Below are positions 26,390-45,918 of a stretch of 64,000 bases of DNA, in pieces. The notes beneath the pieces were generated by a model. The model ran no database searches. It saw only the letters and a list, made by a program, of their open reading frames with translations, and was not told the DNA's origin. Position 1 is the first letter of the stretch, and every line of letters starts with the position of its first letter. Location: NCBI GenBank assembly GCA_907165135.1, contig OU015569.1, positions 5,022,001 to 5,086,000 on the forward strand, written 5' to 3'. Both the position numbers and the translations under genes were made by a program. This DNA is from Oikopleura dioica (Eukaryota; Animalia; Chordata).

Positions 26390-26699
26390 TATGATACAAT
26401 ATAAATTAGAAAAAATTATTATTTTTTTTTAAATTAGAATCAAAATATGAAGCTTGCTAAATGCTTGCAAATGCAGTGTTATGGAACATATGAGTGTGTG
26501 CAGTGATGCTTGATGAACTCTCTTAATAATGTGGTAATAATCCATATAGCAGATTATAAACTGATAATCAAAAATGAGGAAGCGCGTGCTTTGGACTTGG
26601 CGCGGCGCGTCGATTGGTCCATTCAAAAAATGCAGCGAGTCAGCGGGACGATTTCAGAGTGAAGGTCAGGAACACACATCCAATTTCCGAGAAAGAAAA

Positions 26700-27824
26700 A
26701 TGAACCATGGGGACCTGGGAAAGCTGGGAGAGAATCTTCTTCTCGAAGAATGTCGATATGGCGAAACAACGCGTCAACGAAGCGTTGTTTGAGAGACTTG
26801 ATGTTAATCTCGTCGGCGAGCGAACGGGTAAATAGAGGCGAAATACTATTTCGACGTTTTCTTAATACTAGAATTACTTTTATTCTTTTTCAGGTTTCAG
26901 CGCGCTGATGCTGGCAGTTGCCTTCAAGCATGACGACCGGTTGGAAATCGTGAAACGGTTGTTAGCTCGCGGTGCCAAAGTCAACGCCCAATGTTCCGAT
27001 AAGAATGTTTCTGCACTCCATGTTGCTGCTCAGAAAGGTTCTTTTATTTATTGACAAAGCAGGTTTTCATCAAATTTTCTTATTACAGGCGCGCTAGATT
27101 GTGTGACGCTCTTGCTGAAGCACGAAGCGGACCCGACTTTGGTTGATTCTGAAGGGCAAACACCAGGCGAAGTCGCGTACTCCGAGTTGATAGACGAGCG
27201 CAACCGGGTGCGGCAGGAGATCAAGGAGCAATGCTACTGCAGGCTGAAGCACGCGCGCGAAGATTGGATGCAGCGAAAACTAAAGCAGAGCGGCGCCACT
27301 CCTGAGTTTCGACGAAATGTCTTGCAGTCTGTTTATCGAGGTTCTCCGCCAGCAAAAGCCTCTAAGAAAAGAAACCCATCGCCAGAAATCTCGTCGACAG
27401 AAGCGATCCATGGTTCTGCGGATGAGGGCCAGAAGAGAACGCCGATTCGAAAGACTAACAAGGATTCCCCAAAACAAACTACCCGACAACGAGTTGCATC
27501 AGGAAACAGGAAAAGTCCTTACTTGCGGGGCTCGGCAACGGGTCGCCAGTCCCCTCATCAGCTGTACATTAACCGTCCGGGCTTGGGCAAGTTGGAGATT
27601 ATAAACACCCCCCGAAAAGTCGTCCTGGAAGACAATCTCTTTCCCTCTCCTAGATTGAGCTCAAGGAGCCGCAATCCATCTTCAAGACAGCGACACCAAT
27701 CAGATGCTCCCGATCCATTCTCACCTCGAGTTACGCCAAAACCATCGGTAATATTTACATACAAAATTTCAATGTTAATCCCTGTTCAAGGAAAAGTCCA
27801 ATCAAGAGGCGAAAAAGACGGGAG
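26700..27824 (+). CDS. ANKLE1: ANKLE1/LEM-3, 5' part (ankyrin repeats + start of disordered region), cut by the transposon
   Basis: GFSALMLAVAFKHDDRLEIVKRLLARGAKVNAQ, VSALHVAAQKGALDCVTLLLKHEADPTLVDSEGQTPGEVA; last exon piece EKSNQEAKKTG ends at the TIR. Confidence 0.85.
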
Positions 27825-28300
27825 CACTGGTAGAAGTCTCCAATTGTGGCAGGGTGAAAAAAAAATTTTTTTTTCTGAATGGCTCATCTGAAAGAGCTTC
27901 TCAAACTGTATAAAAAACGTTTTTACAGTCTGCCCAAATCTTTGAAATTTTCGAGATTTGGACTTGTCAGAGGTGGAAATTCCGAAATTTTAACTGCTCG
28001 TAGAGCAAAATTTTTCCATAACAAATTTTTTTTTCTATTTTTTTTCGGAAACTCTATAGTCGAATCTATGTGCTCGCGAAAATTGAAGCAGATCGGGCAA
28101 CATTTGGGCTGCAAAAATTTTTTTTTGAGGATTAGTTTTGCATTAATTTTGCAAATATAAAGCATATACTTTTATTTAATTACAAACTACAAAAAATTAA
28201 TCAAATAATGCTCTAAAGTCACTTGAGGTCATTTGAGGTCATCTGAGGTCATTTGAGGTCAACTTTTTTTTGCCGGTAAATTACATATTTTTATTTATTT
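27825..28300 (+). repeat. Left TIR with a (GAGGTCATYT)n array
   Basis: High-identity reverse complement of 40965-41439; AGGTCA at 28226, 28236, 28246 and 28256. Confidence 0.9.
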
Positions 28301-28794
28301 GAAACATGAAAACGATTATTTTATCAATTTTAAAAACAAAAAATAATTTTTATACCGTGCATATGTGTAAGATGCAAATAAAAAAGCACTTTAAACTAAA
28401 AAGAATGAGGCATGTTGTGTTTGTTCCTTCTCGTTTTGTTCTTCTTTTAAAAATCTTCTCAGTCAGAAAATCCAGGCATTCTGCGATGAAAATTTCCTTA
28501 ATATTTTTAAAATTTAAAAAATAAAGATACAAGCAATTACTTTTTTTTCTCGACGGCATAAGAGAGAGTTTAGAGCAGTCAAAGAAGATTGTTTGACGAT
28601 CTGAAACTTTAACACTGAGGATTTCGACCATATTTTTCATGTTTATAAATACCTTTCTTTCGTTTAGGAAGACTCCGTGGTTCTGGATAACTGTCATTCG
28701 CTGTTAAAATTTGTTTTTCGACGCTCTATTAAAAATAATTTAAAAGGCAAAGATTTCAGATAGTAAGATATTTGAAGTTACTGTAAAATATTCT

Positions 28795-30109
28795 TTATTT
28801 AAGGACTTGTTTGCTTAATATCCATTTTTCGAAAAGAATGATGCCGGGGGCAGGGTCCTTAAATCTAAGCTTCTATGAGTATCCTCAATTTTACCTGAAT
28901 AATTGAGACGATTAATTGACGAGCATAATTGTCTTTCAGATGAACTTTATCTGGCGAAAAAAAATGCTGTTTGAGGCTTCTGAAGAATCGGTACTCAAAA
29001 ACATTCAATTTTTTAGTTCTATTTCCAATTAAATGAAAACCTCTTCCTGTTTTACTCGATAATAGTTAGCTAAGCTAGGTACTTTTGCACTTAATATCTT
29101 CTTGAGCCATTTTTGTGTTGATTCTTCAATTGTTCTAAGCGGCTTAGCAAGTGGAAAAGGTTGAACAAAGAGGATTTTTCTTGCATTCGTAAACAGCGAT
29201 GTAAGGGTTCTATGTAAAACCTTTGAAAAGTTCTTTTATTTTTATTTTGTTAATTATCTTTATAATCGGACATAGATAAAAAAAAATGTTCTTGCGACGA
29301 TTTAGATAGAGAAAGAACTATCCTGAATTGCTTTATCTAGGTCAACATCTTGGAATGCCAGTGTTGATGCCTTCAGAATATTGTTGTGTCCAGCATAGAC
29401 TAGAACTGTTCCGGAGACGCGCGAATGACAATTTGTATGGCAATTTTCGCATAAAAATCTCTCCGGTAGATTTTCACCATAGTTCCAGGCATTCCGGCTC
29501 TTGATTTGAAGAATTGGTCTTCTTTCCTCATCGCAGATTTGTCCTACTTTCATCAGGACTGCTAATTCAGTTAAACAGGCACCAGAATATGACGTAATAA
29601 TCCAGTTTTTTTTCTTTAATTTGTGTTTTCCGAAATATTTTATCTAAAGTGGTGTTTGAATAATTTCTTACTTTAGCTAATGAAACACATATATAAGGGG
29701 ACTCCGCGGAAAACCAAAAGCAGGTCGCACCCTCATATTTTGAAAATTTTTACGCGTCTACTTAAAGATCTCAAGATGCTCATTCAGAATCGCGATTAAA
29801 AATTGTATCGGGGGCATCGGGATATAGATATGATGGCCGCCGAAAAGAGGCCCACAAACCATAAAATCGAATTTTTCTCGAATTCCCAATACCCCCGATA
29901 TGATGTTTATTCGCGATTCTGAACAGGCATATCAAGAGCTTTAAGAAAATGTGTTCAAAATTATCTCTCCATAAGGACGCCCCCATTAAAGTATTTTTTC
30001 CGCGTAGACCTAACTGTTCTATCATCTTTTTATATTCAAACAGTCCTGTGAATCTCCGAGAAGGAAATTTGTTTTTTCGTATCCGAAGAAACATGGTCGG
30101 CGCCAGCAC
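28795..30109 (-). CDS. Transposon-borne SGNH/GDSL-hydrolase-like protein, multi-exon; 5' end uncertain
   Basis: Spliced WIITSYSGAC (block II-like), VLVYAGHNNI (block III-like), FFSPDKVHL (block V DxxH); clean 47-nt and 37-nt GT-AG introns; stop at 28795; block I Ser not firmly located. Confidence 0.55.
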
Positions 30110-30194
30110 TCTCGTTCATGCCCTTTGAACCATAAAGACTCCATAACTAATGTATGATATTAAGGATAGAACATGGATATTATGGATAGAACAT

Positions 30195-30577
30195 CGGCTG
30201 AGCGCGGCTGCCCGTTTAGCGCCCCGCCATGACCGTTTTTTCAGAGACCCGTCAAATCTGAACGGTAAATGATTTTATCTTTATTATTTTTGCTTTATGA
30301 TCATCAAAGCCTATTCTTTTATACAAACAATTTGAAAATATCAAAATGGGATAACTTGGTCAAAGTCTCGGAATGAGAGCGACTCTTTCAAAGCCCTCTA
30401 TAAAAATCTAAAGATTTATTTTGAAACTCAGACTAGAAATAAAAGGAAAGTAGAAGTGAAATAGAAGACTAAAAGTGAAGAAGTCGGAGCTCTACAAAAT
30501 CGAAGAATATAATTCATCGTTCAGATTAGACGGGTCTCTGAAAAATAGATAACGACGGGGCGCTAAACGGGCAGCCG
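30195..30577. mobile_element. MITE nested in the large element
   Basis: About 70-bp TIRs GGCTGCCCGTTTAGCGCCCCG...AGAGACCCGTC.AATCTGAACG and their reverse complement at 30517-30577; AT on both flanks. Confidence 0.75.
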
Positions 30578-31145
30578 ATCTTATATTTTACGCTTAAGAT
30601 GGAGAAAACAATTTTTCAATTAACTAGTTTTCCATTTTTCTAACATAGATATTGCGCTCATTTTTCTGACCTGTGTCGAGGCATCACCCATGTTCCGTTA
30701 TGAGAACATACAGACAGTTTGAATCGATGATAAATATTAAATATCTTCTGTGTTTCAGGATTTGATTGAAGAATGGCTGTTTTATTTTATAGTCACACGG
30801 GCAATAAAAAAAATTATAAGCATTCTGAATTCAATGATTTGATTTCTTCTTTCTTTTGCCTTTCTTTTACTCACAGAAAAGAGAATTTCAAAAACAAGAA
30901 TTAACAATTAGGAATATTTGTATTTAACAACGAGGAAAAAAAATGTAATCGTGATATTTCCAGATCAGGAAAAACGGACTCTTTTCGATTCAGCATTGAC
31001 TTCACTTGAATGCTGTGCGACTCTTTTTGATGGAGTTGTTTTATTGCACACCCAATGACTTAAATTTATGAACTGTATTTATTAATATTGCCATACTTAA
31101 TTTTTTTGAGTTGATTTTCCTTGATCTCAAGAATATTCGACGATG

Positions 31146-31520
31146 TTATTTCTGGTGTTCCAGCTTTGAATTCTTGCTCAATTCTTTAATAATTTTTATA
31201 AATAATTTTAAGCAACAAATAATTTTAAAGATTTTTTTTAACCTGTTGAGCACATAGACCGCGCAATCACGATTCGTTTGCGGAACATTTTCGCGTTTTT
31301 TCTTCCAAGGGCCCTGATCATTCAGAATTTTTCCAATAGTATCAAGAAGTTTTTTTTTCGAACTATCAATGGCGTTTTGATAATTTCCAATAGCCCCATT
31401 TGTATCATAGACAGTAACTGAGCGAGATTTGACATTAACGATCAAGAGTGCCGCGTGGTTTTCATCTTTTGATGACAGCAATAATGGTGCACAAATTTTT
31501 TTCGTTTCTTAAGGCTTGGG
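31146..31520 (-). CDS. Ulp1/SENP-type (peptidase C48) cysteine protease domain
   Basis: KKICAPLLL...NHAALLIVNVKSRSVTVYDT...VPQTNRDCAVYVL retains H, D, Q and C of the C48 active site. Confidence 0.75.
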
Positions 31521-31820
31521 TCATTATAAGTGCCTTGAGTCATGTTTCCGACGGAAGATGTAGGATATGAGCAAAAATCTGTTTCTCGAATTTTAAATTC
31601 GGACAAGATAACGATTTTGACCCCGGACTTTGGAAATTTCCGCTTTCAGAGAAGATTTTGATATTTCGCTTAAGAAAAACAGAAAATTAGGTTTTAAAGC
31701 TCTAGAGTCACACCTTTGGCGGGCCACAGGGTAGAGGATACTGACTGTTTTATTTGTATTTTCTAATCTTAAGAGCGCAATCTTAATCAGGGTTCTCTAG
31801 AGCATATAGCCCTGTTTTAG

Positions 31821-34800
31821 TTAATGACGTTCGGTCGTTAAAACCCTTAACTGAGCTTGAATATCTGTTGCAGAGTAGACGTAATCGCTGATTGTTTGTT
31901 TGTTTGATAATTCTCGAAGATTGACGGGTCTTCTTTGAGGCTGATTTTTATTATCAATAATTATTGTTCCGTCTTTCTGTCCGATTTTTCTGGAAAATGT
32001 GTTTCCAGAATTTCGAACACAGAGACTAATTTTTCCACTGGAACAGAGATCGCAGCTGCAGACTATGTCTTTTGCATAAAGAGCTCCTCTTGCTGCGTCG
32101 AAGTTTATCATACGAATCGATTTAATTGACGGTATGTTGAGATTTACGGAAGATTTCGTGGTCTCTTCATTTTTATTCTTGAGAATGGCATATTCTCGCC
32201 CAGCAAAATTTTGTTTTGCGCGTTTTTCTTTTTCTTCTGTCCGCAGCTTCTGCTCATTTTCCTTCAAGAATCCGAGGCATTCATCAAGAGTACCACAGCG
32301 ATTTACAAGTTTCGCATTTTTTATCGTGGTAGCGCAGTGACTATGGGCGCCATCGACGAGGCCTCAGAATTCTAGAATTAGTTTCGCGGAAAAAATACCT
32401 TTTCCATGGCGGCTGGTTTTGAAAATATAAGTTCTCCGCAGGCCATCGTTATTTGAAATGGCATGGTGAAAATGTTCCCTCGATTTGAATTCAGAGCTCG
32501 CATTATGTAAAACAGGGTTCGGGAAATTCAAAGATCTTATAAATCCGCAAGATCGAAATAGACCATTACCTACCGACGAGCCATAATGGAATTATCGTCA
32601 ACATTAAAATGCAAATTTTAACCCTTTCGAACCCTTTCAGAAATCCTGTTAATGACTGTGAAATTTATGTTTCGATTTTTAAAATTTTCAACAATCATTT
32701 TTTCCGCCTCAATCGGCGCTCCGGCAAATTTCTTCTCCATAAGAAAATGAAAGTATTGCATTTTTTGTATTTCGTTTTCATTCCATCGAGCGACCGCCGT
32801 TAAAACGTTACAATTCAATCCAAGGCGCCCGGCTTGAAGATATTCATGCTATTTTTAGGGTTCATGTAAACAAGCCAAGCGAAATTAATGAATTTTCTGA
32901 TCCCGAACTGTGACGCAGTATTATTTTGAAGAACAAACGTCGAGGCGTAGTCAAGCTTTCCACGGGTCTCAGAAAGTTCTTGCTTATAGACACACTTGAC
33001 GTATTCATTCGATACAATTTAAGACCCTCGGCTCAAGATGAAGACTCCCTGGCTTAACATCTCCATGTTCATATACTTTAAGATCTTCTTTATTTCTGCT
33101 CTTGTCGATGCTATGGGCAAGTGTTTCTCTCGTCATACTTTTAAGCTGATCGAAGAATTGCCGTATTGGCATTTTACCGCGAGTTTCGCTACCAGAAACA
33201 AAAGCTGTCTCAGCTTTAACTCCAGCTTTGAGGAGTTCGAATCTGTCAAAGGCAACGGTCTCGTCAGGATGCATTTGTACGACTTTTTCGAATATTTCTC
33301 GATCAAAGTCTTCCATAAATTCATCCGGACCAACGCAACTCTTGTGAGTGCAGTCGCTGCAGGATGTTGAATTTTTTGGGTGAACAAAGCAACTTGTCTT
33401 CTTTTTACGATCAGTGACACAATATTGTTTGTCCGTTGTTGCACAGGTGCTCCTTTCCAAGATTTCTTTGAAATTGAAGCCTGCCAATGCGGGAACGTCT
33501 TATGGAGGGGGGCTTTTTTATCCTCAAGATCTTGTTAGGACCTGTTAACGGATTCTGCGATGAACTGTGATATCTAAGAAAAGAGTCTCCTGTCCTAATT
33601 TCTTTCCAAGGCTCTGCGCAGCCTTCTCATAAGTTCCCTTGTTAAGGCAGGACTAATAAATGGTCTTAATCATATCATGGTGTGATTTCCATTACAGTGA
33701 CAATAAATTTATAATAATTCACGATTTAAGACCCTATCTCGCAGGCGCATACAACTTGCGTTGTACGTGAGGGCGGAATGTAGTAAAATGGAGTCATACT
33801 TTTGAACTCCTTCAAAGTTAGGTGTGTAAGCTGTGGATATTCACTAATAAATTCAGCGTGAAGTTCTTCAAGAGTTTTTTTCAGTATTCTTCTCGAAGTG
33901 GTCAGAGACTGAGTCGTTGGTCGTAGCAAGTCAATTTTATGGGTTCGCGTATCACATTTTTCACGAAGATATTTCAAGACAGTGCGGTCAAGAATTAAGG
34001 ATTCCCTTAGAGTTGCTTTCTTTTGACTCGGATCAATGAAAGCTCTCTCGTCAAGAAATGCGTCTATTGCCGAAACAAATATAGGATTATAGACATGATG
34101 GAGATCGTAAAATTCATTAATTTTATAATCCAATCTAATGAAATATTCGCGGATTTGATCTGATTGAAATTGGCATAATTTTCCCCAGATTCTTTTTCAT
34201 CTGCAAGCTTCTTCAGTTTCTTTTTCTAAAGCGAGGTCGCTCAACTTTCCGATATTTATAATAGGGTGTTTTTCCATTTACTCTATCAATATTGTTTTGG
34301 ACTTTTTGACCGGTCCTTAATTCCAAATGTCGAGGAAAGAACATGAATTCTTTCTTGCGAATTATTTTCTTTTAATACCGCTTTTAAAATCACGTTCTCA
34401 TTTTTCCAAGTTGATTTGTCAAGCATATTTTCATTATTTCACTAGAATTATAATCTTTTATAAATTGTTCTATTCTTTTATAAAATTTTCTCTTCACAAA
34501 CCTTGGTAAAAGCTGCATTTTGATGAGAGTATTTTGATTCTGCTCACTCAGGTTTTGCATTTCACTTTTAATTTCCTCGGTTGTTTTCAAAGTTGACAGA
34601 GCTTCCAAAATACTTGGAACGGAAGATGTACTGGCAATTTCTTCAAGTGCACCTATCAAGTTTTCTTTTTCAAGTTCAAGCCGCTCAGCGGGATTTTCAT
34701 CTATCCAATCAGGATCAGAGTCATCTTCCTCAGAATTCGTCGTTTTATTCTTTTTAAGAATAGAGCGAGGCTGAATGTTTAGTTCCTGCTCTTGGTTCTG

Positions 34801-35510
34801 TTCAACACTTCCTTCCTCTTCTCTAGAGGCGCGTGATATTTTTTCGAGACGAACGTCAGCATCCAAATGCTCTATCGTTGATTTTGATAGAATCCCGACT
34901 TCTTGAGGCATAAAAAGCATCTGCTCACTTGCCTCGACATTTTTCGTTAACACTGTAGGCAAATTTTTTGATGAATGCGGTGCCTCTTGATTTTCAAGAA
35001 GATAAGGCTCTTCAGATGATTTTTGCACCCTGACAGGTTCTTCTCTAACAGCTTGAACTAGACCGGAGCCGAAGTCATCTTTGTGATTACTCACGTGGTC
35101 TTCAATATGCTCTAATGGGATCCTCTGGCAGCATATAAAGCAGGTTGGCAAAACGCATTGTCTGATCTCATGCTGTCGTTTTACCCGGCCATTCTGTTTT
35201 GTTGGACGACTTCCACAGCATTTGTAGGCATCTTTTCTCTTCAATAGCTTCACATCATAGTCTTTGCTTGTGACGGAAGCCGTACAGTTACCAAGGTGAT
35301 TATTGTATAAATCCAAAGAAGAAAAGTGCTTTTTGCAATCTTATTTTTGATAAGAACACAGCATACTTAGACAATCCTGATAATTATTATCTTTCCTGTG
35401 CAGACTCGACCAGAGCATATTTTAACATGATCATGAAATGCTGAGGCAGTAGAAGATGTTGGAAAATTATTTCCACATTTACGACAACAAGAGTATCCTT
35501 TGATGGATTT
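31821..35510 (-). CDS. CMC/CACTA-type DDE transposase with N-terminal zinc fingers, multi-exon, possibly decayed
   Basis: RILKKTLEELHAEF...EFKSMTP...VCACE; LDYASTF; NASSEFKSR...F; TSRHGKG/LVDG; C-terminal VCSCDLCSSG; N-terminal C2H2-like CRKC...FHDH and CFICCQRIPLEHIEDHV; apparent in-frame stops at about 33654 and 35350. Confidence 0.8.
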
Positions 35511-35534
35511 TAACAGCGCTCAAGCTAAAAAGCT

Positions 35535-35605
35535 AGACAAGTCCTGGGATTGAACAACGGTTTCCCGCGTCCGGCCGGGGTGTGCTACCACTGGATCAAC
35601 TCGCC
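35535..35605 (-). ncRNA. Degenerate tRNA-like (Pro-like) Pol III unit or SINE head inside the transposon
   Basis: GGCGAGT...ACTTGTC 7-bp acceptor stem, A-box-like TGATCCAGTGG, B-box-like GTTCAATCC, TTTTT at 35527-35531; D, anticodon and T stems mispaired. Confidence 0.5.
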
Positions 35606-35776
35606 GAGATCTCTATCGAGATTTTGAAATGATACTCTGAACGGTCGGGCCTGAGCGCTGCTAGGACCCATCACCTTTATAATTGGACAATTTAATCGAT
35701 GGACGAGACGTCGGTCCATTGTATCTATTGGGTTGTAAGCGGTCGTTTGGGCAGACAAGTAAAGATAGAAAAATTT

Positions 35777-37463
35777 TTAGGTAAAATATTTTTCATTCTT
35801 TGAAGGTCTGTTCAAAAGGCCGCCTACCACCCTTTTTGTATTAAGCTCTTTAACTAAAAACTTTGCAAAAAGTTTTTCTGCTTCTTTCGCCGTAAAAGCG
35901 GGAGAAGATTTCAGCTTAAGAATGTTAGAAAATTCTTAAAAAAAAACGATTATACCTTTGAGAGAATATCACCTAATTTTGACTTTTTCTTTGACGATAT
36001 TATCTTTGTCACATCATTGATTATTTTCGTGGCAAGTTTATCAGTCATTGATAGAAAACTAAGCTCTCTTAGAGAGTCTGCAGACCGTTGATCGGTGATT
36101 TCGACCGATGCGGCGATCTCGCGGAGCCTACTTCTTGCCAGAGCTTGCCTTAAGCCTGTTGTTTTTGCTTTTGATTCTTTCTTGAACGCGTTTCTTAGGG
36201 AACGAGTTGAAGAATTTGTTCTGGTTAATGGAAAATTCTTCGTCCGACTGCACTCAAGAAGACTTGGTCTATGAGTGCTTGGTTTGCGTGCGATTTTTGG
36301 AAGCGTGATCGTGTGACATTTTCAGTTTTCGTAAGCGCCTCAAGGTGACCATTTTGCGATTGTTTTATCATTTCCATCGTTTCTTCGTGATCTTGCAGAT
36401 ATTGATTCTCCGGTGTGTCCATCGAATTTTGAATTTCTGTCCCGTTGACATGATTGTAAGTGTAGTCGGAATCTTGTATATCCTCACTCACATTTTCATG
36501 ACCATAACTTTGCAGGTGCGAAGAGCAATCTGCTTCCGCTCCTAATTCATTCACTGAAGACGTCGATAATTGAATTTCTGAATCCTCATCAATCGTAAGA
36601 GAACTTATATCTGGCACAGAAGGCGCTCGTTCGTTCATTATGTCGAAATCTGATGAAGATGGTACACTTGGAACGCATCCGTTCATTATGTCGAAATCTG
36701 ATGAAGACGGTACACTTGGAACGCATTCGTTCATTGTGTTTATATGGTCAAGATCAGGGTCTCGAAAAATACGAGGCCAGGCGGCAGCCACAACCCACTC
36801 ATACTCTTTTGGTTTCCACCTCTTAGAGACCCACCTCCGCTGGCCGCCAGGGTTCAGCGGCCACTTGGTGATTCATCTTGCGTTAACGCGACCCAGTCCG
36901 AATTTTACATTATCCGAGGCTGAAATTCGGTCTCCAGTGGAATCCAGCGGCCAGCGGCTGGCTTTGCCGCCAGAGCGTGGATTCGAAAAATGAATGGAGG
37001 CCGTAAGCGAAGGGCGCGCGGAGTATGAATAAATCCTCGCCGCCGCATGGCTGCCAATTTTTCGAAACCCTGGTCAAGATTCATCACACTTGGAACTCGA
37101 CCATAAAAACCTCCGTTAAATCAGTCAGTTCAGAGTTATTCGCCTGAACCTCATCGTGGGAATAAACAGAAATGGTGTCAATATTAAGAATTGACGGAGC
37201 TGTGCCAAGCGGTTCATTTAGATTATCAAGTCTCTCGAGATCAAGAACACTGAAATGCAAAATTAACTTTAATTCAATCAATCTTGAACGAATAAAAACC
37301 TTGGTACTTGAAGAAGATTAACAGGAGCTTCATTGGGGTCAAAGTCATAGTTAGACACAGCATCAATAGAATCGATATTCATGACGCTTGGCGCTGGACC
37401 AAGTGCGCATAAATCATCTGGTGGTGGTTCAACAGGCATCATAGAGACGCCAAACTCGGACAT
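35777..37463 (-). CDS. Transposon cargo protein: acidic repetitive N-terminus, basic helical C-terminus, multi-exon
   Basis: Exons MSEFGVSMMPVEPPPDD..., 16-aa repeat MNxCVPSVPSSSDFDI (48-bp unit, about 36630-36740), ...AEKLFAKFLVKELNTKRVVGGLLNRPSKNEKYFT*. Confidence 0.55.
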
Positions 37464-37660
37464 CGTCTAAATACTTTAACAATTAATCCTTATCCAAGAT
37501 TTTATCGAACAAATTGCTTAAGGGTAACAATCACGTAAAAAATAAGGAAAGAGTGAAAGAAAAGGATAAACATCGTAGAACATTGACATCATAACAGAAC
37601 TTCTCATCCACGACGACGACTTAAAAAAGAAAAATGAACTCCACATCATATAATTCGATT

Positions 37661-39050
37661 TTACCACAAGTTTTTTGGAAACAACGATGTGAGAGAGACA
37701 AATTTTCCACACAGTAATTCGTAATAACCCTGATGTCGTCCACCTTGATTGTAAGATCGTCTTATTCTTTGTTGGAGACGTAGCTCATCATATGCACGAT
37801 GAAGTTGATATATTCTGTAGTCTAAACACCTCGTCATTTCCAAAACATCTATTGTTTCTTTAGATATTTGATTCCAATTTGAAGGCTTGTCAAGTTTTTG
37901 GAAGAAAAAACTTTTAACCAATCGTTCAGCTTTTAATCTGAGCCATTCTTTCGAAGAGATCGTCTTAAATATAACAGCAAGCTCAAGAGGCCTCTTAACC
38001 ATAAATTTTGCAATTTCTCGATCGTCTAGATCAGAGCTGGTTATTTGATAACTGTCGTCACTCGAAAAGAAAAAGAATTAATTTTTAGAGAAATTTTGGA
38101 GACTTTTAAAGCGCTTACTTCTATTATCTTTTTTCTAAAGCTTTCTGAAGATGATTGAACGAGACGAACGCGAAAGATAGAAAAACGACGCGTAAATATT
38201 AATTCGCACACTAAAATTTTTTTGACAGATCATAGGACGCGAATTCGACAGCCATGATCCCGATTATAATCGAAAATTCATATGATAAGCGGTACCGCAC
38301 ATTCAAAAGAGCAATTTATGACAGGCCCGCCCTGAAAATGGAAAACGAAAAACGACTCGACAGTCATAGTGGCTTCAGTTCTTTCCAATATATCTTCTAA
38401 TGCCCTGTACATTTGCTTTGGAGCAAACTCAGGGAGTTGGCTTTGCACGACACGAGACATCATAAAGGTAAGATTCGCCATGGTCCCCGAGCCATCATTT
38501 GACACTTCGAAGGAATTAAGGAATCGTGGGATTTTTCCAAGGTATTGTTTTCGAGCATCCATGGTTTTAACTAAGCAGATCAATTTTTATACTTTTGAAG
38601 CAATAATCAACGATCAGAAAGCAGAAAAAGCGGGTGTGCGCTCCGCGCCTGTCTTAAAGGAAACCCGCAACTTTCTAGAATTGATGGCCTTGAGGGCGTT
38701 GTTGAATTCAGGTTATAGGGACTTTTGCTGATTTCTAAAATGGTCTTTATAGCCTCGATGGCCATGATGTCCTTGATGGCCTTGTCGACAATCTCTTTTT
38801 CTTTTATCGCCAGAGAGAAATGAAAAAAATCGGTCAAAACGAAAAACACAAAGAAACCGACTTAAGCCGACCACCCACCGACCAAACCCCACCACCGATC
38901 AAATCAAAAAAATCCATGGTAGGATCGTTCGGTGCCAATATAAACCCCACCATTTCCGACTAGGTCGAGTTTTTGGTCGGGTCGATGGCCTTGATGGCCA
39001 TGCTGGCCGTGATGGCCTTGATTGCCTTGTTGACAATTTCAGGTTCATCC
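37661..39050 (-). CDS. Further transposon cargo ORF(s) of unknown function
   Basis: Open segments 38002-37661, 38583-38278 and 38849-38607; internally duplicated EIV(D/N)KAIK.I.A motif at about 38800 and 39040. Confidence 0.35.
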
Positions 39051-39098
39051 CTATTAAAGGTGTAACGAACGTAAGTGATCTTAATTCTCGGTCCGAGC

Positions 39099-40310
39099 CA
39101 GAGTTGCAGATTTTTGAAAATTTTTGTGAGCTGAGCTAGCTGAGCTGTGGTCGAAATTGAGCTGAGCTGGCCCCTTGAAAAGCAACTGAGCTGAGCTGGA
39201 TTTTTCGAAAAAATGAACTGAGCTGAGCTGAGCTTGGGCTAATTTGAAAATTTTTGAGCTAAGCTGAGCTGACAATTTTTTTAAGCTGAACTGAGCTGAG
39301 CTGGCCCCTTGAAAAGCAACTGAGCTGAGCTGAATTTTTCGAAAAAAATGAGCTGAGCTGAGCTGAGCTTGGGCTAATTTGAAAATTTTTGAGCTGAGCT
39401 GAGCTGACAATTTTTTTAAGCTGAGCTGAGCTGAGCTGGCCCCTTGAAAAGCAACTGAGCTGAGCTGGATTTTTCGAAAAAATGAGCTGAGCTGAGCTGA
39501 GCTTGGGCTAATTTGAAAATTTTTGAGCTGAGCTGAGCTGACAATTTTTAAGCTGAACTGAGCTGAGCTGACCCCTTTGAAAACAACTGAGCTGAGCTGA
39601 GCTGAGCTGGATTATTTCGAAAAATTTGAGCTGAGCTGAGCTGAGGTTTATCTGTTAGTTTTTGAGCTGAGCTGATGATTTTTCAAACTGAGCTAGCTGA
39701 GCTGAGCTTACAATTTTTTCAAGCTGAGCTGAGCTGAGCTAGCTGAGTTGAGGTTAAAATTGAGCTAGCTGAGCTGATCTGACTTTTCTCGAAGAACCAT
39801 TGAGCTGAGCTGAGCTGAGCTGGCCCCCTTGTAAAGCATCTGAGCTGAGCTGAGCTTGGGCTTATCTGAAAATTTTTGAGCTGAGCTGAGCTGACAATTT
39901 TTTAAGCTGAACTGAGCTGAGCTGACCCCTTTGAAAACAACTGAGCTGAGCTGAGCTGAGCTGGATTTTGTCGAAAAATTGAGCTGAGCTAAGCTGGGGT
40001 TTATCTGTTAGTTCTTGAGCTGAGCTGAGCTGATGATTTTTCAATCTGAGCTTGCTGAGCTGAGCTGACAATTTTTCAAGCTGAGCTGAGCTGGGCTAGC
40101 TAAGTCGAGGTTAAAATTGAGCTAGCTGAGCTGAGCTGACTTTTCTCGAAGAACCATTGAGCTGAGTTGAGCTTGCTTTCTTCAGAAAAATTAAGCTGAG
40201 CTGAGCTGAGCTGACCCTCACCTCGAAATCGCTGAGCTGAGCTGAGCTGAGCTGTAGCTCATCTAGCTCATATAGCTCACCTCAGCTAGCTCACAAAATT
40301 TGTAACTCTG
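39099..40310. mobile_element. Non-autonomous hAT element filled with GCTGA pentamer satellite
   Basis: TIRs CAGAGTTGCAGATTTT / AAAATTTGTAACTCTG; 8-bp TSD GTCCGAGC / GTCCGCGC; interior is (GAGCT)n in higher-order units of about 120 bp. Confidence 0.8.
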
Positions 40311-40964
40311 GTCCGCGCTATTCCGATTTACGGAAAATTGTAAAATGAGGGAATTATAATGGCCTAAATTCCCTTTTATAATTTTAGACTTGTAATAGAT
40401 ATATCTGTTTAAAAAATAAGTCAAACGATAATTATAATAAATAAGTATAAGAAGGACCACCGAACATACTGTTTTTTCAGAATTTTTCTGCGCGAGGCCC
40501 ATCTAGGCCAAAACCGTGGGGGAAGTCTTTAAAGCATACCTTCTGTCTTCGTTTGAATTCTACTTTCTTTGGAGTCAGTCGTTGGCAGGATTTCTTCTGT
40601 TTTTGATTTTTTCTGCAATTAACAAGCGTCTTATATAATTTTAAGAATAAATATATATATTTAGTATACCTGTCACGGGTATCGAAAATTATTAACAATC
40701 TTTCTCTTAGCTTTCTCTTCTTCTCTTTCAATTTTGTGTGTTTCACAGAATTAACTTTCTCGAAGTGAACTGCCAGCCAGAAATTAGTTTGGAAATTTTT
40801 TCATACTGTGATTTTGATTGATGCATCCATTAAATAATCATTAATGAGCGAGGTAGTTCCGGAATCGCGAGCGCATGTGTACACTTCACCGTCGATCGAT
40901 ATTGAAACAAAAATTTTCAAAATCAAATGAGCAATATTTTTGCTCAAAATTATTATTTTCAAAA

Positions 40965-41439
40965 TTAAAAAAATAAAAAATGTAATTTAACGGCAAAAAA
41001 ATTGTTCTCAAATGACCTCAGATGACCTCAGATGACCTCAAATGACCTCAAGTGACCTCAGAGCACTATTTGATTACTTTTTGTAGTTTGTAATTTAATA
41101 AAAGTATATGCTTTGTATTTGCGAAATTAGTGCAAAACTAATCCTCAAAAAATTTTTACAGCCCAAATGTTGCCCGATTTGCTTCAATTTTCGCAAGCAC
41201 ATAGATTCGACTATAGAGATTCCAAAAAATTAAAAAAATTTTGTTATGGAAAAATTTTGCTCTATGAGCAGTTAAAATTTCGGAATTTCAACCTTTATCA
41301 AGTCCAAATGTCGAAAATTTCGAAGATTTGAGCAGACTCTAAAAACGTTTTTTATACAGTTTGAGAAGCTCTTTCAGATGAGCCAATCAGAAAAAAAAAA
41401 ATTTTTTTCGACCTGCCACAATTGGAGACTTCTACCACT
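40965..41439 (-). repeat. Right TIR with a (TGACCTC)n array
   Basis: Reverse complement of the left TIR; five TGACCT copies at 41013-41058. Confidence 0.9.
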
Positions 41440-43999
41440 AGAAATCACGGCGCTGCCACGGCCAACTTTGACAGAAAGCAAAAATTCGCCGAAGAGTGCC
41501 TTTGTCTACCCTTCACCTGAAAAACCGCCTCTTCAGGAGCGTTCGAATAATCAAACACATGATTTGACCGAAGCTTCAGAAGATCACAGTAGATGCTTGT
41601 TCGACGATTCTGATAAGGAGCCTTCTGTCATCGAAAAGTCTCATCAAGAAGAAAAAGAAAACAGTCCTGAATCTGCGACCCCTCGTTCCTTTCGCGAATT
41701 CTCCACGCAAACTCCTCCATATTTATCACCGGTTTCTGAGGTCTTATGTCCTTCTATTCCGCCAGTGACTGTAACGCCGATCGCCCCTGCAACCTCTTCC
41801 GGGACCACTCTAAAGAGGCAAAACGAGTTCAGTTTACGAAGCAAGCCCCTGAAACTTCCAGTTCCAAAAGTTCCTGCCGCCCTTGAAGAGACCATCGACA
41901 ACGACTCTTTAAACAAATCAAAGAGCGAAAATCTGCAAAATCCAAGCAAAACTAAAGATATCCCCGACCCTACTTGTGCGAATTCTGAAAGCTCCGTCGT
42001 ACTCAAGCACTCCCTTAACGATGTTAAATCAACACTGCCTAAATTTCAGGGATCCATAACGGAGACAAGTTTGTTTGAGTACTTTGAAAAGTCGCTTGTC
42101 CTGCCAAATTTTGCCGCGTGCGAAGATCCTTCAGCTAATTTGACGGATGAAAGCTCGTCCTCCGAACATGCTCGCAAATCAAAAACGTCCAGCAGTTCCA
42201 AAAGCGTGCGGCGTATGTCTTCGAAAGAAGGAAGATGTGAGAGGAAGGAAGTTTCCAAACTAGACAACACGCAAAAGTCTGAAATCAAGGAGGTCGACGT
42301 GTCATCAGATTACCATAATAACGAAACATTTGCTCTCCAAGGCGGCTCCAGAATAGAAACTTCAAGAGAAGAGAACCCAGCAACGCCCACTGAAACTACC
42401 TGCGAAACACCGGGAAAGACAATTTCGCGAAAATCTTCCACTACCTCCTCGTCATTCAGTTTCCCACCACCACCGGACTTTATCCAATCGATAGTGGTCC
42501 ACCCTTCGCCTGAGAAGAGAACTCCCAAGAAGCAGAAGACCGGTGACGTTTCCAAGAACGCCAATCTAGACAAATCTGGTTTAGCAACGGTGCTCTTTGA
42601 AACAAACAACAGCGCCCTGCCCTCGATGATGCCGGGGTCCATCATCGACTTGGTCAATGTTCCCACGGAGCCGCCTCCTCCCTCCTTGATGATGACACCA
42701 GTCAAGGAAGATCAGATTCTCGCGGAAGATCATCCTGCTAATTTGACAACAAGCGAGGGGGCACAAAGCTTCCACCTGGAATATTCATTCTCGTCGATGG
42801 AAAACTCGATTGAAATCATAGAAGACGGAAAAAGTATTGCGCGAAAAGTGGAGAATCTCTCGGCTACAGAAGAGCAGCCGAATCTCAATCTTAGGAAAGT
42901 TTCATTTTCCGTGAATCGAATCATTCACTCATGAATTTTTATTTCTGAAAACTCGCAAATGATCAATAATGGCGAAAATACCCGAAATCGTTTGCGAAAC
43001 ATTTTCTCAATTAAATTTTGATGAATGAAAAAATTGAAACTACGAAAAGCTCTAGCTCAGAAGTAGGCGAAATGGACGATACAAAGCTGCGACTTGAGCT
43101 GAGAAAGTTCAAGGTTTGCGTGCCTCCATGTCTCACCGATGCAGCCAGATGTCGATTCAAAGGCAAATTGCGAAAAATGCGCGATGTTGGAGTCGAATTT
43201 TCAGCCGAACTTATCGAAGCAATTCACACAGTGGATATTCGTGGGCCACCTACTGGGGAGAATAATTTACGAAACAAAGTTTGCAACGATTCCCGCACTC
43301 CTGGAAAAGATCCCAAACGGTAACGATAAGGTGCAAAAAATTTCAAGCACCACCGTCTTTCTTTAGATTTTTCAATTACCTCCTCCTTGATCCGCGGAAG
43401 ACAAACAATCTGACAAGAAGAGTTCAGCAAAATCCGAATCTGTCCAGTGTCGATATTTTGAAATGTTTCATGAAATCAATTTTCTACGTAGGAAAAGGTA
43501 CATTAATTCGTCAAACTTTGATTCGAATGTAGAATTCTAGGCACTGGTACTCGGGCGCACGCGCACATCAAGGAAGCGATGGACTTCAGTTCCAAGAAGC
43601 CTGGTTACAAGATGAAACTGAAAACCATTCAAGAGATTTTTGCTACGCCGAGGTCGAATGTTCAACCCAACGAGGAGCAAAACTATGGCCTGCTGGTTTG
43701 CGAATTCTCGAAAAATATTAGCAACGCTCAGGCGCTCAATCAAGAAGCTGCTATGATCGAAGGAATGGCTTCATTTATCTCCGTTTTTTAGTTATTTGAA
43801 TGAATTATGAAAAAGAACTTACGAGTGATAGCCTCCAAAAGCAATCAATATCGAGAACTTGACGAATTATAAACGCGAGAAGTTCTCGTTGAAATGGAAA
43901 GACGAAGACATTCGCGAGCTCGGGGCCGAGTTGCTCTGCCAGGCCTGCAGAATGTACCTCATTGAGAACGAGCATTTTCTGTATCCTTCACATGTGTAA
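41440..43999 (+). CDS. ANKLE1: ANKLE1/LEM-3, 3' part (disordered region, LEM domain, GIY-YIG nuclease)
   Basis: LEM: MDDTKLRLELRKFKVCVPPCLTDAARCRFKGKL; GIY-YIG: FNYLLLDPRKT...FMKSIFYVGKG...AHIKEAM...EAAMIE...LTN...ELGAELL...LIENEHFLYPSHV*. Confidence 0.9.
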
Positions 44000-44803
44000 A
44001 AGCACTGTTTTTTTATTTTTAAATATTTTAATAAATCCCACTTCACTCTTTCAAGAAAAAGTCGAGTCGGCTGTCAACTTGACCAACTGCATCGAGCTAA
44101 ACTCGCTCCTCCGAAAAGGCGATTTTAGATCATCATGCAGGATCGATTTTTCTTTTGTTGAGCGGTCTTCAAGTTGAAGATGTGTTTTCCTCGCGGGGCG
44201 GACCGCCTCAAACCGTGAGAATCGTTCGTTGACGTGAGTTGATTGGGTGAGTTTGCTTTACTGAGTTGGCGCCCGTTCCCGCCGAGCCGCTCTGCTTCAC
44301 AACACACTCCTCCGCTCCCACTCTCAAAAATATAATTCAAAAAAAATCTGAACATCTATTGCGGCGACGAGAGAAGCTCGCGTTCAAGAAGGAGAAAGGC
44401 TGCGGAATTGTTGTTACGAAAATGCGCTTTCTAAGAATTAGATGATTGGTACTAGTGTTAGTTACCGAACGAAGTAACGTCTAGGGAAAACAACCACACA
44501 GTCACAAGCGGAGACAGATGCAAGTCACAGAAGGTAATCACTGCTACTGTAGATTACATTAAGGCATCCTTCTTTTCTAAGAAATGAGTGCAAGAGTCAA
44601 TTTGCGCATGATTTTTTTTCTTTTGTGGTTTATTGGAAAATGATAGTCCAACTTGTTTGACGGAAATAGCAATAACGAACCATCTACAATGGGCTTGGTA
44701 GATTACAGACTAAAAATTCCCTTTGAGAGTGCAGTTTTAAAAAAAATAGTCGAAGAAATAGGTGCTTCAAAGAAATAGTTTATGTTTTCAAAAGGTTCTG
44801 GTT

Positions 44804-45332
44804 CTAGTTGTTGTTGACAGTTCGTTTCGTTTTCTGCTTCTTTTGTGGAGGTTCTAAAACTATTTTTGAAACGACCGATTTTCTAAGAAAACTCACCAAG
44901 GATATGATCCCATTCGGTTTCGTTAGCAACTTCATCTGATTGATTAGCGAACCAAGCTTTAGCCATTTCGGAATGGCGAGGAGACCAGGCCTGGTGATTG
45001 CTCCCGTCTCCAAACTGGAAGTGAACCCAAGTATATTTCATCGCTTCGTACATCGCATCTTTGACTCGCGGGTTCTTCCCGAACTCATCTCTGTAATCCT
45101 CAAGATGGTAGATGTCCTTCTGAGGGATCCAGGCAATTTGATGGGTGCCGTAGAAGTAGATCGGCCAGTGGAACTCGGGATCGTTAACGGGTGCAGGGAG
45201 GTTTCCTTGGTCTCTGGTGGGGCACCTGTTCGGTCGGATGCAGTCGATCCGAGCTGGCCATGCAGGGTAACTTCTCATCTTGGCGAAGACGAGGTCGCCA
45301 CTAGCCAGCGGGTGAACGGGAACGGTCGCCAT
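44804..45332 (-). CDS. HDGF/LEDGF-type PWWP-domain protein
   Basis: GDLVFAKMRSYPAWPARID...WPIYFYGTHQIAWIPQKDIYHLEDYRDEFGK. Confidence 0.85.
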
Positions 45333-45918
45333 TGACAAGGTCTATTTTCGTACTTTTCGCTTTTGTCTCTGAAAATAGAATTTTTGATTTCTGAATTGAA
45401 GTTCAAAAGCGTGAGAGGTGGATGATAAGTCTAGAAACTTTTTTCTCCGAGAAACAAATAATCATTCGAAAAAGCACGATGTCTAGTGATGAAAAATTAA
45501 GTGGGTCCTTTTTGATACGGACCAATCTGGAGTATTCATTTAATTTTCGAATTTTAGTATTTTTCTAATGTATCCTTTTTTAAATAGGGCGAAGATATTT
45601 TACCTAGTACGAGTGAATAAAGTCTCTTTTACGTTTCTTATTAGTTTACTTCTTCTCTCTTTTTGCAAAAATAACTTTTTTTTGAAGAAAAAGTTTCCTT
45701 CGGGGAATTTTTTTGTTGTTTTTAAAAGCTTTTTCTGCTCGAAATAAAACTTATTCAGCTTGTTTTGGAGCTTAGAAAATAAGAACGAACCGATATCTTC
45801 AAATTATTTTTGTCACCTTCAGTATTCCCACTCGAATCTAAGTAGACAGTCGGTTTTAGCACTATTAGTTCGCAATTTGCAATTGAGTTGGAGCGTCGCG
45901 AAAATTTTCGGCGCGAGG

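Follow-up and report, generated by a model that had tools for sequence, protein, structure and literature searches.

We analysed a 64,000-nucleotide window of the Oikopleura dioica genome (contig OU015569.1 of GCA_907165135.1, positions 5,022,001 to 5,086,000) in which a gene of the ANKLE1/LEM-3 type, encoding ankyrin (ANK) repeats and a GIY-YIG nuclease domain and spanning 26707-43999, is interrupted in its fourth coding exon by a 13,608-bp DNA transposon. The ends of the insertion and the 3-bp duplication of its target are placed to the base, empty alleles are present in other samples, the gene is otherwise intact, and the contig is the X-specific scaffold of the reference assembly. We regard it as highly probable that this is a recent and polymorphic insertion, likely a null, carried on the only X chromosome of the reference male. 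A cut-and-paste DNA transposon of 13,608 bp would then have recently entered exon 4 of the single ANKLE1/LEM-3 gene, and its family, which carries a zinc-finger/Ulp1-protease gene, would still be mobile.

An interrupted ANKLE1/LEM-3 gene and its empty site

The link between the two flanks of the element is provided by an uninterrupted relative. A protein search with the right-hand exon found a 1,005-amino-acid product (P0014) encoded on intron-less contigs of 3.16 kb from two sequencing runs (L003 and L004), whose simplest interpretation is assembled mRNA from a sister lineage of O. dioica. P0014 has Ank and LEM-3_GIY-YIG domains on one polypeptide and reads ...KKTEALEITALPRP... straight across the insertion site, and a 9.9-kb genomic contig of the sister lineage holds the whole ANKLE1 gene within about 3.5 kb. 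When the element and one copy of the target duplication are removed from the window, the exon model yields an unbroken frame of 1,065 amino acids with 0 internal stops, which aligns colinearly from one end to the other with P0014 (66.5% identity) and the more distant 1,001-amino-acid homologue P0004 (42%). The sister mRNA and the removal model thus confirm what a preliminary description of this DNA had proposed, that one gene is split mid-exon by a large inverted-repeat element and that both of its halves are intact; the prospect that the halves are separate genes everywhere does not hold, since the sister lineage has both domains on one product.

The empty site itself was recovered from wild plankton and from two further DNA runs. 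Two predicted proteins (P0001 and P0008) that are 98% identical to the right exon begin MFKEKSNQEAKKTEALEITALPRPT and carry the uninterrupted junction. Their sources are the Tara Oceans metagenome contigs L001 and L005, which differ from each other at 7 positions, are 98-98.7% identical to the flanks and join 27828 directly to 41436 onward with the overlap CACT. Run X5, from a different study (2022), has a contig of 2,987 nt that fits 41436-43486 and whose 937-nt overhang, ...AGTCCAATCAAGAGGCGAAAAAGACGGAAG, is the left flank; run X4, of 2025 and under the label of another organism, has one of 471 nt that fits from 41436 rightwards and likewise overhangs into the left flank. The overhangs of both runs read ...GAGGCGAAAAAGACGGAAG, as does the left flank. 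The depth of the X5 empty-site contig, 73.8, is the same as that of the rest of the gene, and in X4 the values are 49.5 for the empty site and 43.8 for the gene. That the insertion is recent or haplotype-specific, as had been suggested, is therefore supported by empty sites in two Tara contigs, in the sister lineage and, at full locus depth, in X5 and X4.

The age of the insertion can be judged from the same sequences. Between the window and the exon in X5 and X4 only about 0.6% of positions differ, no lesion is present elsewhere in the gene and the two copies of the target duplication are identical, all of which argues for a young insertion; the direct empty sites and the unbroken 1,065-amino-acid frame likewise point to a recent event. 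The insertion very probably segregates in the Okinawan O. dioica lineage, with wild plankton and other animals carrying the uninterrupted exon.

The exact boundaries follow from two comparisons. The window reads ...AAGACGGGAGCAC/TGGTAGAAGTCTCC... at the left junction and ...GGAGACTTCTACCA/CTAGAAATCACG... at the right. The alignment of L001 covers 27161-27828 and 41436-45425, the two parts sharing the 4 nt CACT (27825-27828), and in contigs of runs X6 and X4 that represent other copies of the element the match ends exactly at 41436, with unrelated flanks beyond. Together these give a symmetric solution in which the element occupies 27829-41436 (37.9% GC, termini GGTAGAAGTCTCC...GGAGACTTCTACC) between two copies of a 3-bp duplication, ACT, at 27826-27828 and 41437-41439, the length of the duplication resting on this one insertion. 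The element begins GGTAGAAG and ends CTTCTACC, so that its true termini are GGTAG...CTACC; the leading CAC is host DNA, because the empty site carries it. About 321 of the 1,065 codons precede the point of entry, which falls in the disordered linker that separates the ankyrin repeats from the LEM-like/GIY-YIG part.

These boundaries revise the details of the preliminary description while keeping its frame. The empty site reads ...AAGACGG(A/G)AGCACTAGAAATC... and the uninterrupted exon ...AAGACGGAAGCACTAGAAATC..., and the protein obtained by precise removal is ...EAKKTGALEITALPRPT..., the wild allele having ...KKTEALEITAL.... The join first proposed is in frame, but in its exact bases it is 9 nt short, and the product ...KKTGEITAL... 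derived from it is wrong by the empty site of L001. The AG duplication is rejected on the same grounds in favour of ACT, and the label 'CACTA-like' had rested on the host CAC, whereas the termini are GGTAG...CTACC and no CACTA-type transposase was detected.

The exon borders of the window gene, all on the plus strand, were derived with P0014 as guide, and L003, aligned as nucleotides, is interrupted at these positions too. Exon 1 (26707-26827) starts with the ATG at 26707 and was located by tblastn with P0014, with the L003 cDNA aligning over 26695-26829; exon 2 (26894-27037; L003 at 26893-27038) encodes an ankyrin repeat; and exon 3 (27089-27747), which contains the end of the ankyrin region and the start of a disordered linker, is given alike by tblastn with P0014, the exon model and the L003 alignment. 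A 43-nt GT-AG intron (27748-27790) follows, and the frame stays open only with this intron removed. The left part of exon 4 (27791-27828) ends with the left duplication copy at the position to which L001 and L005 align, and its right part (41440-42894) continues the disordered linker. Exon 5 (43050-43319), with the LEM-like motif, is colinear with P0014, and L003 aligns to 42894 and resumes at 43048. The GIY-YIG domain is encoded by exon 6 (43367-43497; start of the domain with the FYVGKG motif, PF22945 E=2e-9), exon 7 (43541-43762; middle, E=4e-5, supported also by P0014 colinearity and L003) and exon 8 (43842-43999; end, E=1e-5), the last with the stop codon at 43997-43999. The introns at 42895-43049 and 43763-43841 are non-canonical GA-AG introns whose positions are backed by L003 and P0014 colinearity. 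In the public annotation the right half appears as two separate small genes, fragments of 239 (P0007) and 209 amino acids; the 239-amino-acid model, identical to a segment of the window exon, starts at an internal methionine, and the broken gene is mis-annotated rather than flagged.

In overall order the protein resembles ANKLE1 of mammals and LEM-3 of C. elegans, structure-specific nucleases that cut chromatin bridges: ankyrin repeats at the N-terminus are followed by a disordered linker of considerable length, then by a LEM-like stretch and, at the C-terminus, by a GIY-YIG domain of the LEM-3 type in which the Y-x-G motif of the catalytic core is kept (FYVGKG). As had been described, ankyrin sequence lies to the left of the element (26896-27036; Pfam Ank E=7e-8, Ank_4 E=4e-5), with Pfam matches to Ank_2, Ank_4 and Ank_5 in P0014 and P0004, and the GIY-YIG domain lies to its right, where the three consecutive exons cover profile positions 2-148 of 151 of PF22945, a family that full-length P0014 matches at E=4e-32. 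The LEM domain assigned to the right half was not recovered: with the Pfam threshold relaxed to E<=10, neither 43051-43317 nor the corresponding parts of P0014 and P0004 gave a LEM match, a PDB sequence search returned no LEM protein, and it is only by eye that a LEM-like motif (D-T-K-L-R-x-E-L-R-K...R-x-x-F-K-G-K-L-R-K) can be made out at 43069-43180. Beyond this lack of a detectable LEM domain here and in the larvacean homologues, the gene differs from ANKLE1/LEM-3 in its linker of about 600 amino acids, which evolves fast (53-66% identity between cryptic lineages), and in being interrupted in the window allele.

Consequence for the reference allele

OU015569.1 (12,959,145 bp) is the X-specific scaffold of OKI2018_I69, an assembly made from a single male in which the X-specific region is haploid (PMC8008620). 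The size of this region is 12.9591 Mbp, with a Nanopore depth of 140 versus about 255 for the autosomes (Table S1, PMC8008620). Since the scaffold is X-specific and the source was one male, the reference animal is hemizygous and has the interrupted allele only.

As judged from sequence, the insertion most likely inactivates the X-linked ANKLE1/LEM-3 of this male. A transcript from the gene's own promoter would enter the element and encode a product of 348 amino acids, made up of the ankyrin repeats, a portion of the linker and 26 residues that the element encodes, and GT-AG splicing at the element ends would instead give a frameshifted product. A null allele, the outcome foreseen in the preliminary description, is thus the likeliest consequence of an interruption within the exon for which GT-AG removal shifts the frame. 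It would be a tolerated loss of function, like the ANKLE1/LEM-3 nulls of worms and mice: worms null for lem-3 show normal proliferation and mice deficient in Ankle1 are viable (PMC5820297), which by analogy makes a tolerated null in the reference male plausible.

Several points count against this interpretation. Exon words were absent from all O. dioica RNA runs searched, so that the null state is something we infer, and a 2026 oligo-dT RNA run labelled as the same species (X12) gave just 20 partial reads, with 90-95% likeness, over a conserved stretch, none of them at the junction; given that degree of likeness, X12 probably comes from another cryptic lineage. A paralogue of ANKLE1, should the genome have one elsewhere, may compensate. 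No transposase was recognised in the element, which may or may not be autonomous. The junction comparison covers contigs of other runs, not the own reads of the I69 male (X1 and X2), and run X6, from the same study as X1, is too shallow at the junction to judge. Finally, the allele could retain partial function if a transcript from or through the right inverted repeat were translated from the ATG at 41378, giving a LEM-like/GIY-YIG nuclease without ankyrin repeats. An open reading frame (ORF), 41378-42934 on the plus strand, does start within the repeat (41378-41440) and continues in frame with the exon, 22 element-derived codons being followed by ...ITALPRPT, and the downstream exons are all intact. 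However, 21 stop-free codons in the repeat could easily arise by chance, neither a promoter nor a transcript supports the ATG at 41378, and X12, though probably of the wrong lineage, has no junction reads; we consider partial function distinctly unlikely.

Less likely again is splicing of the whole element out of the pre-mRNA like an introner, as one giant intron whose ends are brought together by the long inverted repeats, so that near-normal ANKLE1 is made. The gene already has its two GA-AG introns, and GT (27830) and AG (41440-41441) are present at the element ends. Their use, however, would remove 13,612 nt from GT (27830) to AG (41441) and leave the mRNA one base short, shifting the frame by -1 so that a stop follows after about 12 codons; a GG donor at 27829 would also shift the frame, and in-frame removal would need a TG donor of no known kind. 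A 13.6-kb intron would be extreme for the O. dioica genome, and there is no RNA support for its removal. The window element shares with the introner-like insertions of Fritillaria borealis the placement of an inverted-repeat transposon within a coding exon of a larvacean gene, whereas those introners are short, non-autonomous and spliced at their ends and the window element is 13.6 kb long and would cause a frameshift through GT-AG use. An assembly artefact, either a chimeric join or a misplaced transposon copy, is extremely improbable, for although the junction evidence comes from sequences other than the assembly's own reads and the inverted repeats are present in several copies, independent empty-site contigs match both flanks in exact colinearity, the target bases are cleanly duplicated, unlike at a misjoin, the public record has the same sequence (OU015569.1:5063215-5065934, L002, is 100% identical to window 41215-43934) and X1 contains 95% of the words sampled across the left junction.

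A polymorphic insertion that likely abolishes ANKLE1 has consequences for the use of this assembly. In the chromosome-scale reference most used for O. dioica, ANKLE1 is broken and annotated as fragments, and a comparative study could mistake it for a lost or split gene. To our knowledge O. dioica is without classical end joining, and the reference male is a candidate natural hemizygous knockout of a chromatin-bridge nuclease in such an animal, a ready-made allele for testing how a genome of this kind handles bridges and branched DNA. The species is highly polymorphic, and gene-disrupting polymorphic insertions are expected. Because of this, and because ANKLE1 nulls are viable elsewhere, current views are unchanged: we regard the result as a solid but fairly ordinary polymorphic insertion of a recently mobile, unclassified transposon. 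As a separate observation, two marine metatranscriptomes (X25 and X26) contain 5% of the exon words, a hint of wild transcripts of this lineage.

The inserted transposon

The element is bounded by long terminal inverted repeats of which the left, about 475 bp, lies at 27829-28300 on the plus strand and the right at 40967-41436 on the minus strand. The arms are 93% identical (alignment A1; repeat pairs I1-I4, I7 and I9), and a 26-nt terminal sequence occurs exactly twice in the window versus 0 times expected by chance. A 10-bp subterminal repeat, GAGGTCATTT, is present in four to five copies at the inner end of each arm, as arrays at 28218-28261 (4.4 copies by Tandem Repeats Finder, TRF) and 41007-41060. 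The GC content of the interior is 37.9%, compared with 42-47% in the flanking gene.

A multi-exon coding region on the minus strand (31149-38586) consists of stop-free segments, whose predicted joins follow the path with the least introns. It includes C2H2-like zinc-finger motifs at 34393-35519, an unassigned middle part at 31824-34196 and, at the C-terminus (31149-31508), a Ulp1/C48 protease domain that has His, Asp, Gln and Cys in their places (Pfam Peptidase_C48, E=8e-7). Peptidase_C48 was the only Pfam match in about 30 stop-free segments on both strands, none of which gave a transposase, and NCBIfam gave none either. Word-indexed protein searches with two element exons returned no match even at E<=1, exact-product look-ups showed three element ORFs not to be on record, and the spliced model with the least introns has no recognisable DDE motif. 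Among metagenome contigs of the JGI, the exact terminal 21-mer had 0 matches and a protein-guided scan gave 0 confirmed ones; within the 64-kb window there is no second copy of the element.

A language-model search gave a single weak lead. In the ESM Atlas, exon 33008-33499 fell among fungal hypothetical proteins and 31824-32363 among unrelated lectin folds. For exon 33729-34196 the nearest named clusters were DUF7869 and DDE_Tnp_ISAZ013, at scores of 0.65-0.74, which is within the range of chance, and the stretch that matched looks like a helix-turn-helix rather than a catalytic core. Single-sequence AlphaFold models of two element exons, with pLDDT values of 39.5 and 44.8, were too poor to use.

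Two superfamilies were considered more closely. Like CACTA/EnSpm (CMC) transposons, the element is large, has a 3-bp duplication and long, structured ends that bear short subterminal repeats, and encodes a Ulp1-like protease, a gene that is captured or encoded in some plant CACTA and Mutator-like elements. CACTA/EnSpm termini, however, are 5'-CACT(A/G)...(T/C)AGTG-3', in contrast to GGTAG...CTACC here, and the roughly 30 segments lack any Pfam match to Transposase_21, Transposase_24 or a related model. The latter negative is weak because the Pfam CACTA models are plant-centred and the gene is split by introns; membership in CACTA thus fails on the termini, and the transposase evidence does not decide. 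Zator elements, said to have been described by Bao, Jurka and Kapitonov in 2009, are reportedly eukaryotic relatives of bacterial ISAzo13/'transposase 36' with 3-bp duplications. The window element shares the duplication length and, for one exon, the weak ISAzo13-cluster neighbourhood, yet neither Pfam nor NCBIfam gave a match to the ISAzo13/transposase 36 model (PF07592) and the two other exons had unrelated neighbours. A Polinton/Ginger-type element was rejected on the wrong duplication length and the lack of an integrase, polymerase or capsid match. Given the mismatch of the termini and the lack of a known transposase family, we leave the element without a superfamily assignment.

The number of element copies varies between animals, as indicated by contig word depths, a rough measure of copy number. 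Although the site in ANKLE1 is empty in X5 and X4, the interior of the element is present elsewhere in both (depths of 172.8 and 42.9, respectively), and in X6 the interior reaches about 37 versus about 4.5 for the gene. The inverted repeat (40955-41436) is generally covered more deeply than the interior, by roughly 2-4 times in X5 and by as much as 5 times in X4 and 4 times in X6, and this excess in three DNA runs suggests shorter derivatives, resembling MITEs (miniature transposable elements with inverted repeats), that share the element ends.

A further reading, which we think unlikely, supposes that the family is still mobile, with a transposase that belongs to no superfamily so far described or resembles that of Zator only very remotely. 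O. dioica, without classical end joining, repairs breaks by microhomology, and on this reading excision of the element could for this reason reseal on the 4-nt CACT that the duplication leaves and restore the exact wild-type exon; a precisely resealed site would read ...GCACTAGAA..., and the X-linked knockout would be reversible. The insertion itself shows recent movement of a large DNA transposon family in a genome in which 44% of repeats are unclassified (PMC8008620), which is useful for transposon biology and possibly as a vector for transgenesis.

The remainder of the element contains further repeats. A GAGCT-rich tandem array of 1.1 kb lies at 39113-40254, with units of about 135, 36 and 5 bp, and a 48-bp tandem repeat at 36632-36739 (2.2 copies, 95% identical) falls in a minus-strand ORF of the element, where it encodes the repeated ...VPSVPSSSDFDIMN.... 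The non-coding left third has two short internal inverted-repeat pairs, at 29742-29965 and 30205-30577 (arms of about 80 and 72 nt), which may be small nested insertions. Outside the element and the ANKLE1 gene, the adjoining downstream ORF (44883-45338, minus strand) opens with a PWWP-like motif (...SYPAWPARI...), recognised by eye only.

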